A stretch of DNA of 63,383 nt, the filler included, from Dimorphilus gyrociliatus (lineage: Eukaryota > Animalia > Annelida), in assembly GCA_904063045.1 (NCBI GenBank). It is 7 parts of 7 records of this genome, joined end to end, with 100 filler letters (N's around TTAATTAATTAA, not from the genome) between each part and the next. Parts side by side here need not be neighbours in the genome. Positions count along the whole stretch, not along the records: positions 55,151 to 61,504 come from CAJFCJ010000105.1; 6 more parts are not named here. The stretch is one strand, 5' to 3'. Below the pieces are notes generated by a model. That model was not told the DNA's origin and searched no databases. It saw only the letters and a program-made list of their open reading frames with translations. This document shows, one piece after another, positions 55,151-61,504 of this stretch (position 1 is the stretch's first letter; each line of letters begins with the position of its first letter). Made by a program: the position numbers and the translations under genes.

Positions 55151-57840
55151 ACAAACTCTACTGACAAAACTATTTTTAAGCAACAATCCAATTGGAACTG
55201 AAGTTGGAAAAAGTATTTTTGAAAATATTAAAACAAATTGCACAAAGTTGACAGCACTTGATTTAAGCAATTGTGGATTTAAATCAGAATTGGTGATGTT
55301 GTTGGAGATGCAATTGGTAAACAAACTCTACTAACTGAACTATTTTTAAGTGACAATCCAATTGGAACTGAAGTTGGAAAAAGTATTTTTGAAAATATTA
55401 AAACAAATTGCACAAAGTTGACAGCATTGATTTCCAAAATTGTGGATTTAAATCAGGAATTGGTGATGTTGTTGGAGATGCAATTGGTAAACAAACTCTA
55501 CTGACTACTATCTTTAAGCAACAATCCAATTGGAACTGAAGTTGGAAAAAGTATTTTTGAAAATATTAAAACAAATTGCACAAAGTTGACAGACATTGAT
55601 TTCCAAAATTGTGGATTTGAATCAGGAATTGGTCATGTTGTTGGAGATGCAATTGGTAAACAAACTCTACTAACTGGCTGTCTTTAAGGGACAATCCAAT
55701 TGGAACTGAAGTTGGAAAAAGTATTTTTGAAAATATTAAAACAAATTGTACAAAGTTGACACACATTGATTTCCAAAATTGTGGATTTGAATCAGGAATT
55801 GGTCCTGTTGTTGGAAATGCAATTGGTAAACAAACTCTACTAACTGAACTATTTTTAAGTGACAATCCAATTGGAACTGAAGTTGGAAAAAGTATTTTTG
55901 AAAATATTAAAACAAATTGCACACAGTTGACAGACATTGATTTCCAAAATTGTGGATTTGAATCAGGAATTGGTCATGTTGTTGCAAATGCAATTGGTAA
56001 ACAAACTCTACTAACTTGGCTGTCTTTAACAGACAATCCAATTGGAACTGAAGTTGGAAAAAGTATTTTTGAAAATATTAAAACAAATTGCACAAAGTTG
56101 ACAGTCATTGATTTCAAAAATTGTGGATTTGAATCAGGAATTGGTCCTGTTGTGGGAGATGCAATTGGTAAACAAACTCTACTGACAAAACTTCTGTTAA
56201 GCAACAATGCAATTGGAACTGAAGTTGGAAAAAGTATTTTTGAAAATATTAAAACAAATTGCACACAGTTGACAGTCATTGATTTCCAAAATTGTGGATT
56301 TGTATCAGGAATTGGTCCTGTTGTTGGAAATGCAATTGGTAAACAAACTCTACTGACAAAACTTCTTTTAAGGAACAATCCAATTGGAACTGAAGTTGGA
56401 AAAAGTATTTTTGAAAATATTAAAACAAATTGTACAAAGTTGACACACATTGATTTCCAAAATTGTGGATTTGAATCAGGAATTGGTCCTGTTATGGGAG
56501 ATGCAATTGGTAAACAAACTCTACTGACAAAACTTCTTTTAAGGAACAATCCAATTGGAACTGAAGTTGGAAAAAGTATTTTTGAAAATATTAAAACAAA
56601 TTGTACAAAGTTGACAGTCATTGATTTCCAAAATTGTGGATTTGAATCAGGAATTGGTCCTGTTGTTGGAGATGCAATTGGTAAACAAACTCTACTAATG
56701 TGGCTGTCTTTAACCAACAATCCAATTGGAACTGAAGTTGGAAAAAGTATTTTTGAAAATATTAAAACAAATTGCACAAAGTTGACAGTCATTGATTTCA
56801 AAAATTGTGGATTTGAATCAGGAATTGGTCCTGTTGTGGGAGATGCAATTGGTAAACAAACTCTACTGACAAAACTTCTGTTAAGCAACAATGCAATTGG
56901 AACTGAAGTTGGAAAAAGTATTTTTGAAAATATTAAAACAAATTGCACACAGTTGACAGTCATTGATTTCCAAAATTGTGGATTTGAATCAGGAATTGGT
57001 CATGTTGTTGCAGATGCAATTGGTAAACAAACTCTACTAACGTGGCTGTCTTTAAGCAACAATGTAATTGGAACTGAAGTTGGAAAAAGTATTTTTGAAA
57101 ATATTAAAACAAATTGTACAAAGTTGACACACATTGATTTCCAAAATTGTGGATTTGAATCAGGAATTGGTCATGTTGTTGGAAATGCAATTGGTAAACA
57201 AACTCTACTAACTTGGCTGTCTTTAAGGGACAATCCAATTGGAACTGAAGTTGGAAAAAGTATTTTTGAAAATATTAAAACAAATTGTACAAAGTTGACA
57301 CACATTGATTTCCAAAATTGTGGATTTGAATCAGGAATTGGTCATGTTGTTGGAAATGCAATTGGTAAACAAACTCTACTAACGTGGCTGTCTTTAAGCA
57401 ACAATGCAATTGGAACTGAAGTTGGAAAAAGTATTTTTGAAAATATTAAAACAAATTGCACACAGTTGACAGTCATTGATTTCAAAAATTGTGGATTTGA
57501 ATCAGGAATTGGTCATGTTGTTGCAGATGCAATTGGTAAACAAACTCTACTAACGTGGCTGTCTTTAAGCAACAATGCAATTGGAACTGAAGTTGGAAAA
57601 AGTATTTTTGAAAATATTAAAACAAATTGTACAAAGTTGACACACATTGATTTCCAAAATTGTGGATTTGAATCAGGCATTGGTCCTATTGTTGGAGATG
57701 CAATTGGTAAACAAACTCTACTAATGTGGCTGTCTTTAAGCAACAATCCAATTGGAACTGAAGTTGGAAAAAGTATTTTTGAAAATATTAAAACAAATTG
57801 TACAAAGTTGACAGACATTGATTTCCAAAATTGTGGATTT
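55151..57840 (+). CDS. Ribonuclease-inhibitor-like LRR array: 16 tandem 171-bp (57-aa) units; first units frameshifted
   Basis: ATTGGAACTGAAG recurs at 55191, 55361, 55529, 55699, then every 171 bp to 57751; each unit holds LxxLxLxxNxI and LxxIxFxxCxF. Confidence 0.88.
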
Positions 57841-57860
57841 GGTTAGGGTTACACAGGGGT
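57841..57860 (+). other. Telomere-seeded junction that truncates the LRR array
   Basis: GGTTAGGGTTACACAGGGGT is identical to 34208-34227 and replaces the expected GAATCAGGA continuation. Confidence 0.85.
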
Positions 57861-58321
57861 CCCCAAAAAAATTTTGAGTTCATAAGTTATGGAAATATTC
57901 AGTTTTGTTTGCTGATTATAGATCTGTAAAAAATGACCTAAAAATGTTTTTAGTTTGGCTGTTGTTTTTTAAAAACGTTTAAAAAAAAATACTATCATTC
58001 TATAGAGAATAAAACTCCAACTTCTAATAGCTTTTTTAAGTTGATTTTTGGTATGAAGATGTAGTTTGGGCTTATATAAGTTTTGGTGAAAAGATATACC
58101 TAATAATGTTCTTTGGTTACTAGGGTTTGCAAAGGGTTTTTTTTTTTGACTAAATCAAAAAAGAGAAACAGGATTCTCACATTTCAAGAGTCCCAGTTGA
58201 TTTTGAGAAGCAGTCAAAGAAAAAATACACCAAAATCGACATTTAAAACAATTTCCAACAGAAAAAATTTTTTCAAAAAATTTTCAAAAATATTTTTCTT
58301 AAATTTTTTTCCTACCTACTT

Positions 58322-58378
58322 GACCTACCACGGTTTCGTCCTCCTCTCTATTTTTATGACCAAGGACTCATCAGGGTC
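58322..58378 (-). ncRNA. Minimal type I hammerhead ribozyme (second copy)
   Basis: Minus strand GACC-CUGAUGA-GUCCU(loop)AGGAC-GAAA-CCGUG-GUA-GGUC; stem II covaries with the copy at 34422. Confidence 0.88.
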
Positions 58379-59149
58379 TATTAACCTACACCTACAGAGA
58401 GGTTGAAGGATTCCAATAGGGAATTCACTTCTTCAGGTCTTTTTTTAATATATATCATATTGAAAGTGCTATGTATTATGATACTGTATATCAGAATTTG
58501 TACATACCATTTTAATATCATCAGCAATTGTAGGGGATGTTCATTTAATTGGGTATTTTAAATGTGATTTTGACTCCTTCTTCAAACTAAATATGAACAG
58601 TGTGAATAAAACATTTAAAATATATATAACACACTTTCCTGTTTAATGACATATCTAAATACCATTCTATCATTGAAGGATGTATATTTTGAAAGGAATT
58701 GTAGAAGTTGTTCATAAGACCAGCTATTTTTAATGTGATGCTGACTCCTTAATCTTCAAACTATAAATGATTTCTGTGAAAACATATTCACTTTATATAT
58801 AAGACACATGGAAAATCCTGTGGGAACATGCCACAAGCTAATCCAGGTTAGATAAAATTATATAATGCTAACAGATATGTGACAGCATGAAATTAGTAAA
58901 CTGTGAGAAAACTGATAATCTAACAAAGTCTGTGTATGAGAACTTACTATAATAGTTCAATGCAATAGAAAATTGAAATTACTGTTTAGAAATATATTCA
59001 TTATATCAATTCAATATATCCTATTTAAAACATAATAATTTTTATAATGAATTTTAGAAGGAAAATGCACTAAACTTCAAGGCAAGCTAGGTTGAAAAAT
59101 AAAAAGGATAATTAAATTCAGTAAAAATATTTGAGATAAGGAAGTCAAT

Positions 59150-60890
59150 ATTAGTATATGTACAAAATTCAAAGCTCTATCATAATTAATAATAAATCTA
59201 GTTTTTTTCTGACGAATATTTTAAGGCTTACAACAGAGTATATATGTAGTGTTCCTTAGAATCCATATCTCAGCAACTACTTGGCCAATTTTCATGAAAT
59301 TTTCACCAAAATTATTGTCAGAAAAAAGTATGTACAATTAGAAAGACCATTGGTACATTTATTAAGTATTTCTCATTTAAAAAATATTAATTAGAATACT
59401 GAATTATATAAGGAAACTGCATTAAAATTTAACGCACCATAGCTCCCAAACTATAGGAGATATTTGAATTCTGTTAAAAGATTTGCAATCAGCATATCCA
59501 TATTGGTTTATGTGCAAAATTTGAAAGCTCTATGATAATTAATAAGTAATTTAGGTTTTTGATGACGAATATTTTAATGTTACAAGCAGAGTTTTAATAT
59601 AACATTCATAGGAATCCATATCTCAGCAACTACTTCAATGATTTTGATCAAATTTGAAGTAAAATTAATGACAGAATGAGACCATATTAAATTACAATGA
59701 ATCAAAATTGTAAAAGTTAATTGAAAGAAAAGTTTTAATATTTGTTTTAAAAAGTTGTTTTATTTAAAAAGAAAAAGGTATATAAAAATGAAAAACAAAT
59801 AAATCTCTATAATCTAGAATTAAAAACATATGAAATGAAAAATAATGATAAAGTTATTGTCTATATAATTGTTTCAAAAACTGCTTCAGAAGTTTCAAGA
59901 GACAAGTTTGTTCTTTTTTATATTCTTTGAATATGAAGTCTATGAATTTGAATTTTGCAATCCTAAATGTACTTTCAACTCTAGGTAGTAGAAAGTTAGC
60001 AGTCAAAGAAAAAACACACCAAAATCAAAGTTTACAACAATTTCATACATTAATTAAGTATATGTCATTTAAAAAATATTAATTATTATAATGAATTATA
60101 TAAGAAAAATGTATTATTTTTTTTTAACGCACCATAACTCAAAAACTATAAGAGATAATTAAAATCTGTAAAAAGATTTGAAATTGGCATATCAATATTA
60201 GTCTATGTACAAAATTTGAATACTCCGTGATTATTAGTAAGAAGTTTAGTTTTTGATGATGAATATTTCAACATTAAAAACAGAGTTTATATATAACATT
60301 CATAGGAATGCATATCTTAGCAACTACTGGACCAATTTTGATCAAATTTGAAGTAAAATTATTGGCAGAAGAAGACATGGATAATTAGAAATATATTAGT
60401 TACACAAAGACAATATTTTCCATTTAAAAAAAAAAATTTATATAATGAATTATATAAGGAAGATGCTACTAAACTTCAAGGTAACCTAGCTAGGAAACCA
60501 TAAGAGATAATTGAATTCTGTGAAAAGATTTGAGATTGGCGTAAGAATATTAGCTTATGTACCAAATTTGAAAGCTCTATCTTAAATATTAACAAATTTA
60601 ATTTTTTTATGACGAATATTTTTTTATCTATATTAGCCTGTAACAGTGTTAAAGTACAACATTCAAAAGAATGCATATCTCAGCAACTACTGGGCCGATT
60701 TTGATCAAATTTGAACTATAATTATTGTCAGAAAAAAATTTGTACAATTAGAAAGACATTCGGTACATTAATTAAGTATTTGTCATTTAAAAAACATTAA
60801 TTATTATAATGAATTATATAAGGAATATGCATTAAATATTAAGTAAATGTAGCTCTCAAACTATAAGAGATACTTGAATTCTGTAAAAAG
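59150..60890. repeat. Degenerate ~355-bp tandem repeat
   Basis: CATATCT(C/T)AGCAACTAC anchors at ~59263, 59616, 60311, 60674 with colinear flanking motifs. Confidence 0.7.
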
Positions 60891-60896
60891 ATTTAT

Positions 60897-61504
60897 TGTA
60901 CAACTTTGGTTATATTTTACATGCTTGAACTCTATTATTTTATGCAACATATACATGTACATCTTAAAACCTATGCAAGAAAATGCTATAACATTGGCCA
61001 AACATAAGTCTGATTAGTCAGCTTGAAGGTTCATCTTTAATTACCAATAAAGGTTTGGCCAAGTTATAATTTAATTAACTTGCCTAGGGTGTGGCCAAGT
61101 TATAATTCAATTAACCTTCCTAAATGTTGAACCTTGTAACATCCTGTTACTAAAGATAAATATGAACTACACATTTTGGCAACTGTAAAGTGATGATTGG
61201 ATGTCAGAGACAAACCTCAAAGTATATAAATCCTCACTATTGTCATTTGGCATGCAGCTTCCATCTGGACCCAAGGACCTGGGAAAATCATCTGGAAACA
61301 ACCTCCACTGGAACCATCCATCTACTCCTCAACATTGGAAGACAGTTTGGTAATTTGGCAACCTGCTATTACAAACTATCTACTCTGCTATTGAACTCTC
61401 ATATTGTTACTTGCTTAAGTATTATTATTGCGAATAAACCATTTTAATTTAAACATTTGTTTAAAGGTTCGAGTAGAACCAGTATTGTTATAACTTGCAA
61501 ACGC
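60897..61504 (+). repeat. Second copy of the gypsy LTR, cut by the contig end
   Basis: About six differences over ~608 bp versus 49028-49636 (counted by eye). Confidence 0.92.

Follow-up and report, generated by a model that had tools for sequence, protein, structure and literature searches.

How does a gene made of leucine-rich repeats (LRRs) come to break off in the middle of a repeat unit, directly before a short telomere-like sequence and, a few hundred nucleotides (nt) further on, a hammerhead ribozyme (HHR)? The question is raised by one piece (positions 55151-61504, record CAJFCJ010000105.1) of a window of 63,383 nt, the whole stretch of DNA that was analyzed, filler included, from the annelid Dimorphilus gyrociliatus. 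The analysis described here covers this piece, of which ~3.66 kb lies to the right of the LRR junction. An earlier note on this DNA had postulated a telomere-seeded "retro-healing" system, in which a ribozyme-processed RNA attaches to a break or to an end seeded by telomerase. The minus strand from 58983 (or further) to 57841 fits better as the 3' part of a non-coding, multi-copy retroelement of the Penelope-like element (PLE) or retrozyme kind than as a new system of that sort. That the end of such an element meets the LRR gene here at a target-primed junction, whichever the source of the priming 3'-OH, is considered somewhat probable.

The break itself is sharply defined. A tandem array of 171-bp LRR units (plus strand, 55151-57840) ends after 15.8 units, the final one being broken off mid-unit after ...GTGGATTT / ...TTGTGGATTT at 57840. 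Past this position the unit consensus would read GAATCAGG, whereas the actual sequence is GGTTAGGGTTACACAGGGGTCCCC. The boundary thus lies at 57840/57841, give or take the g at 57841, which is compatible with both sides. Directly after it comes the 20-mer GGTTAGGGTTACACAGGGGT (57841-57860), at which, as the earlier note had it, the LRR frame is broken; the stop codon of the 696-aa LRR frame is a TAG within the telomere-like 11-mer that begins the 20-mer. The array does not resume anywhere in the remaining 3.66 kb.

Logan contigs of four public runs (three labeled as organism A and one as organism B, from two studies) were compared with 57700-59000. An 86-nt unitig of run X3, with a depth of 162, matches 57785-57870 with zero mismatches. 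It extends from the junction by 56 nt to the left and by 30 nt to the right, one nt under the bridging rule of the mapping tool, and it means that junction-spanning 31-mers exist in the raw reads. The junction between the LRR array and the element, which the earlier note had wished to see crossed by reads at 57840/57841, is consequently not an assembly artefact.

The reads also indicate what kind of sequence begins at 57841. A contig of run X3 (634 nt, record 18) matches 57841-58121 with 0 differences and terminates exactly at 57841, and in the same run a second flank is present as a 29-nt loose end before that position (...TTATGGGTTAGGCCACTCACACAACTCTG). A contig of run X5 (663 nt, record 24) matches 57841-58121 with 3 differences and carries 29 foreign letters before 57841; the alternative flank in the X3 and X5 contigs reads ...CACAACTCTG|GGTTAGGG.... 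Finally, a contig of run X1 (630 nt, record 2) matches from 57847 onward and contributes 493 nt of a third flank. Three distinct left flanks thus meet the element at 57841, 57841, and 57847. Given one terminus with several flanks, a multi-copy element has its true end at 57841 and includes the 11-mer. Neither of the two alternative flanks from the reads occurs elsewhere in the piece, and a local partial tandem was accordingly rejected. The same 281-nt terminal stretch, with 0-3 differences, and the same alternative flank are seen under organism labels A and B in different studies; the two labels stand for close relatives, or else a single organism has been filed under both.

The telomere-like 11-mer (minus strand, 57841-57851) reads GGTTAGGGTTA on the plus strand, so that the 3' end of the sense strand is UAACCCUAACC-3'. 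It is an exact (CCCTAA)1.8, i.e., 1.8 units of the reverse complement of TTAGGG, and it is encoded by the element. Since it recurs unchanged at this boundary beside a different flank, it must be templated by the element rather than result from variable addition by telomerase, and the telomerase-seeded end suggested by the earlier note is consequently unlikely. Further telomeric repeats are absent elsewhere in the piece. When the 3'-terminal 120 nt of the element are folded, the 22 terminal nt are predicted to be unpaired, in a fold that is no better than those of shuffled sequences. The exact 20-mer has no match in metagenome, viral, or prokaryote genome collections, which hold hardly any eukaryote DNA, so that this negative carries little weight.

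The second feature of interest is the HHR, a complete type I ribozyme on the minus strand (58316-58394) that was recovered by its core pattern, by Rfam, and by a full descriptor. From 58394 to 58316, the minus strand reads UUAAUAGACC-CUGAUGA-GUCCU-(20-nt loop)-AGGAC-GAAA-C-CGUG-GUA^GGUCAAGUAG. The core is complete (CUGAUGA ... GAAA, A15.1-U16.1, and an A, thus a non-G, at position 17). Helix II (GUCCU/AGGAC) has 5 bp from G10.1-C11.1 and a 20-nt loop, and helix III (AC/GU) has 2 bp, A-U and C-G, with a CGUG loop. In helix I, formed by UUAAUAGACC and GGUCAAGUAG, 8/10 positions pair and the end is open, which makes this a hammerhead of type I. Cleavage is predicted after GUA, at 58326/58325, the very position given earlier. 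The earlier note had thus correctly placed a minus-strand hammerhead downstream of the junction; it lies 474 nt from the CCCTAACC end (58326 to 57852), and 485 nt separate the cut site from the end of the element.

The core pattern CTGANGA-N8-38-CGAAA occurs once in the piece, with 0.03 occurrences expected. The full descriptor demands the core, a helix II of at least 4 bp from G10.1-C11.1, a 2-bp helix III with a loop of 2-6 nt, a non-G at position 17, and a helix I of at least 4 bp. It is matched once in the piece and 0 times in 3000 Markov-1 simulations of the same length and dinucleotide make-up, and the motif is therefore taken as real. Rfam returns Hammerhead_3 at 58394-58329 with 23 bits (E 0.22 for the piece and 0.0069 for 201 nt). 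A degenerate version of the HHR finds no match in the metagenome or viral collections, again with hardly any eukaryote DNA in them.

Canonical metazoan type I HHRs have a helix III of 1-2 bp with a palindromic loop of 2-4 nt and act as dimers (PMC4209133). Judged by its sequence, the architecture of the present HHR matches theirs. In contrast, most metazoan PLEs carry the "min-HHR" (PMC4209133), from which the present ribozyme differs in having no extra nucleotide between A9 and G10.1 and a canonical-like helix III. The monomer fold is predicted at -3.9 kcal/mol versus -11.8 for the alternative minimum free energy fold, and -9.4 kcal/mol is predicted for an intermolecular helix III of 8 bp that the near-palindromic ACCGUGGU can form. 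Thus, by analogy with the published cases, the HHR would need a second copy, as a dimer, or a protein in order to cut (after PMC4209133 and PMC11167929). Like the 3'-terminal 120 nt, the HHR monomer folds no better than shuffled sequences; an HHR that depends on dimers would be expected to behave in this way, and the result is neutral evidence.

Whatever its activity, the ribozyme did not process the template that was copied here. The DNA copy, like multi-copy contigs, retains the catalytic core and no less than 590 nt of the sequence upstream, and this upstream sequence on the sense strand (minus strand, 58395-58983) is itself multi-copy (X1 records 6-8). Since the whole HHR core was copied into DNA, the template was not cut at 58326/58325; the hammerhead is retained uncleaved in the DNA copy, and the ribozyme-processed RNA of the earlier note does not fit. 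Another part of that proposal stands, in that there is indeed the terminus of a multi-copy element, with the polarity of target- or end-primed reverse transcription of an RNA ending in ...UAACCCUAACC-3'.

These features can be arranged into a model. The sense strand is the minus strand, on which ~172-bp repeats are followed by the type I hammerhead, an A/T run, a block of very high copy number (block B), the 281-nt terminal block (block A), and an AC-rich 3' end. An RNA of the element would end in ...GGGGACCCCUGUGUAACCCUAACC-3', which is predicted to be unpaired. A DNA 3'-OH within the LRR unit (...GGATTT-3') would then have primed reverse transcription at this 3' end by a PLE reverse transcriptase, an enzyme related to telomerase that would act on the element in trans. 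The 11-mer was supplied by the element itself, and the hammerhead was carried uncleaved into the DNA copy. The plus strand shows the order (target, complement of the tail, antisense element) that is characteristic of reverse transcription with a DNA 3'-OH as primer, and this priming step is suggested by the anatomy of the junction together with known PLEs and non-LTR elements. The 3'-OH could have been supplied by a nick of a PLE endonuclease at an AT-rich ATT site or by a break, and both fit. A nick at ATT(T) by a PLE endonuclease would give the same junction as the healing of a break, and the locus accords no less well with an ordinary PLE-type insertion at an ATT site than with healing. The piece contains neither a telomere array nor a chromosome end, and it stops short of the 5' end of the element.

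A precedent for such an insertion is PAc, a PLE of Anolis that has been studied with the purified protein. Its endonuclease prefers ATT, and its reverse transcriptase starts in an AC-rich region that is non-homologous to the target (PMC11167929). On the same strand as the 3' insertion end, and just upstream of it, lies its HHR, which cuts only with protein; furthermore, HHR mutants leave insertion unaffected, so that uncleaved RNA is the main template (PMC11167929). The target end ATTT, the AC-rich element end, and the retained HHR upstream of the 3' insertion end are as in PAc, and the likeness to the endonuclease-bearing Penelope/Poseidon elements would, by analogy, extend to an ATT target, an AC-rich start of reverse transcription, an uncleaved template, and an HHR that needs help to cut. 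Unlike those elements, the present one shows no open reading frame (ORF) or pseudo-long terminal repeat (pLTR), and its distance from HHR to end is ~4-5x longer.

Retrozymes offer a second point of comparison. Metazoan non-LTR retrozymes are tandem repeats of 170-400 nt with type I HHRs that give rise to circular RNA (PMC7229834), and retrozymes have been linked to the pLTRs of PLEs (bioRxiv 10.64898/2026.07.22.740005). The present element resembles them in its canonical type I HHR with a short helix III and a palindromic loop, and in being AT-rich, non-coding, and multi-copy. It differs in that there is a single HHR, whose region is unrelated to the neighboring 172-bp units, without a tandem HHR monomer. 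Two such ~172-bp units lie upstream of the HHR, at 58523-58634 and 58694-58807, and 58312-58522 has no similarity to them (z 0.3-0.7). A tandem retrozyme was rejected, as neither the adjacent 172-bp repeats nor those of 363 bp show homology to the HHR region.

It should be noted that several observations weigh against a single PLE- or retrozyme-kind element at this locus. No ORF of at least 50 aa in the 3.66 kb right of the junction has any Pfam match, neither a reverse transcriptase nor a GIY-YIG ORF is present there, so that the partner reverse transcriptase for which the earlier note proposed a search is missing from the piece, and no minus-strand ORF right of the junction exceeds 66 aa, in a piece that ends 3.1 kb upstream of the HHR. 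The lack of a Pfam-matching ORF makes the element non-autonomous or a fragment. Neither a pLTR duplication, only 47-52 nt of block B being duplicated, nor a second HHR, the core match being single, is found in the piece. The Rfam score of 23 is below the gathering threshold of 48.5 and was obtained on a type III model, the low value being due to the long loop II and the permuted topology. The 474 nt between HHR and 11-mer compare with ~100 nt in PAc and with direct adjacency in the Athena and Terminon elements. In addition, the term telomere-like rests on TTAGGG, which may not be the repeat of the host. Finally, the other copies of block A have 0-3 mismatches and then diverge at 58121/58122, and the depth of block B is far above that of blocks A or C. 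The terminus and the hammerhead may therefore not be one module and may belong to different repeats stacked on one another. Thus, membership in a PLE clade fails on the reverse transcriptase, which is absent in the piece, an Athena-like assignment fails on the adjacency of HHR and repeat, and a retrozyme assignment fails on tandem HHR monomers.

What, then, are the alternatives to the favored insertion of a PLE- or retrozyme-kind element? The one that survives best, and that is still unlikely, is endonuclease-independent attachment of the kind described for Athena and Coprina. In this model, the CCCUAACC at the RNA 3' end would anneal to a G-rich overhang, or to a short seed added by telomerase, at the broken LRR end, and the cDNA would extend the end and thus heal the break. 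The mechanism is published: Athena, Coprina, and Terminons, all PLEs that lack an endonuclease, use short reverse-complement telomeric repeats beside a 3' HHR to attach to G-rich overhangs (PMC8557442, PMC6431247, PMC5537684). Retro-healing as conceived in the earlier note is therefore, in substance, the model already put forward for endonuclease-deficient PLEs rather than a new system (PMC8557442, PMC6431247). As in these elements, of which the Terminons are from bdelloid rotifers, an HHR lies near the RNA 3' end, a short stretch that resembles reverse-complement telomeric repeats forms the 3' terminus, and the antisense element is joined to G-strand-like sequence (PMC8557442, PMC6431247).

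Attachment to a free end would accord with a terminus of 1.8 reverse-complement TTAGGG units that is predicted to be unpaired, and the polarity (LRR, G-strand 11-mer, antisense element) is that of end-primed synthesis. The difference in boundary among copies, 57841 versus 57847, is as it would be for priming in different registers, and the 3.66 kb in which the LRR array is not resumed are repeat-rich, like subtelomeric DNA. However, in Athena and the Terminons the HHR is directly followed by the telomeric stretch, whereas here the two are 474 nt apart, with a likely junction at 58121/58122 between them. These elements also differ in that the present piece has no reverse transcriptase, endonuclease-less or otherwise, no telomeric context of further repeats, and no 5'-truncated element capped by repeats; moreover, the present terminus is (CCCTAA)1.8 rather than their (ACACCC)n, and the junction is with an internal LRR array. 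The identical 11-mer in two copies with different flanks argues against seeding by telomerase, and the target end ATTT is equally compatible with an endonuclease nick. An extended form of this proposal would have a non-autonomous HHR element, in a eukaryote probably with TTAGGG telomeres, use its encoded CCCUAACC 3' end on free DNA ends without an endonuclease and thus cap internal breaks, such as one in the present LRR array. This would be an Athena-like lifestyle outside the described taxa and architecture, with a distal HHR and no reverse transcriptase in cis, and it, too, appears improbable.

Another explanation, which is regarded as doubtful, holds that the locus is an incidental mosaic. 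In this case, the terminus would belong to block A only, a short repeat, and the HHR, some 200-470 nt away in a region dense in repeats, would come from a different repeat, a remnant of a retrozyme or PLE, so that there would be no functional module. The structure of the stretch between terminus and hammerhead bears directly on this idea. Block A (minus strand, 57841-58121), the 3'-terminal 281 nt of the element, is multi-copy, and its copies in X3 record 18, X5 record 24, and X1 record 2 all diverge exactly at 58121/58122. At this very point (58113-58145) the sequence reads GGTTACTAG|GGTTTGCAAAGGG followed by 11 T. The G/T-rich linker GGTTTGCAAAGGG, together with the first 5 T of that run, occupies 58122-58139 (minus strand), the run extending to 58145, and on the minus strand the region reads A11-CCCTTTGCAAACC. 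From its sequence, the linker may mark where a second retroelement, stacked on a 5'-truncated first one, has its 3' end.

Block B follows (minus strand, 58140-58273). The read depth in the Logan contigs is multi-copy across all blocks and extreme over this one, at ~10-60x the neighboring blocks in run X1, and a part of it (58209-58260) recurs alone at 59998-60049 (47-52 nt, 87-89%), directly before a 363-bp unit. An A/T low-complexity run with periods of 11-13 nt (58262-58311, no strand assigned) was found by the repeat scan between block B and the HHR, and several X1 contigs jump from ~58270 to 58335-58360. Consequently, the stretch from terminus to hammerhead looks composite, perhaps with minus-strand elements stacked on one another. 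Against a merely incidental assembly of parts stands the minus orientation that all blocks share where it can be judged.

A DNA transposon is highly improbable. Here, the 20-mer would be a terminal inverted repeat (TIR) that reads CACAGGGGTCCCC, with a TTA target duplication, and the HHR would be internal cargo. Termini of the CACAGGGG type and TWA targets do occur in cut-and-paste families, which counts in its favor. However, 57901-61504 contains no copy of the terminal 18-60 nt in either orientation. A TIR partner inside the piece was accordingly rejected, although the opposite end of such a transposon could lie beyond the contig, and the earlier note's own concern that the 20-mer might be such a repeat finds no matching inverted end in the piece. 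Furthermore, two differently flanked copies share a boundary 11 nt before CACAGG, and the 11-mer thus belongs to the element rather than to the target. Finally, a chimeric assembly, in which an LRR contig was fused to a repeat contig and to which the repeats on both sides of the junction and the short pieces of a fragmented source assembly might point, can be dismissed as extremely unlikely in view of the mismatch-free X3 unitig across the junction.

The LRR gene that was interrupted deserves a few further remarks. The tandem repeat scan gives the array, counted to 57841 with the shared g, a period of 171 bp, 15.8 copies, and 93% matches. Its last 12 units keep the frame at a length of exactly 171 bp, and units 1-4 are 168-170 bp and frameshifted; because each of these four shifts the frame, the array was already partly degenerate upstream. 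Units 1-4 (55151-55827) may represent either partial pseudogenization or assembly indels. The open LRR reading frame (plus strand, 55756-57846; 696 aa) has Pfam matches to LRR_1, LRR_4, and LRR_6. A word search with 352 aa of the array gave no match at E <= 0.001, and a protein-cluster search yielded nothing more specific than generic LRR clusters of ciliates, rotifers, and amoebae. Exact-protein look-ups with the LRR ORF and with a 97-aa ORF over the HHR yielded no contigs. The LRR unit is present in hundreds of genome copies. Words from 57700-57840 reach ~100-200x single-copy depth in run X2 and thousands in runs X1 and X5.

The region to the right of the junction is repeat-rich beyond the element as well. 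Five AT-rich units of ~352-363 bp, 74-83% alike, lie at 58976-60894 and are interrupted near 59700-60045; they are either satellite-like or internal repeats of a larger element. The last stretch, 60900-61504, has an LTR-like look, with a 36-bp direct repeat at 61052-61122, TATATAAA near 61225, and AATAAA near 61435, and no ORF with a Pfam match is found in it. A scan for bacterial-type promoters and terminators was uninformative.

If the ordinary reading is true, that is, the insertion of a PLE- or retrozyme-kind element at a target-primed junction, the locus adds one more HHR-bearing repeat of this type, which has disrupted a member of a very large LRR family, and it would be useful for annotation. 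If, on the other hand, genome-wide data placed the copies systematically at truncated genes beyond which the target does not resume, with telomere-repeat registers that vary, then the range of endonuclease-independent attachment by telomere mimicry would grow to include a new group of hosts and a non-autonomous element. In that event, the system would also provide a tractable case for understanding how primers are chosen by the reverse transcriptases of PLEs, the closest relatives of telomerase.

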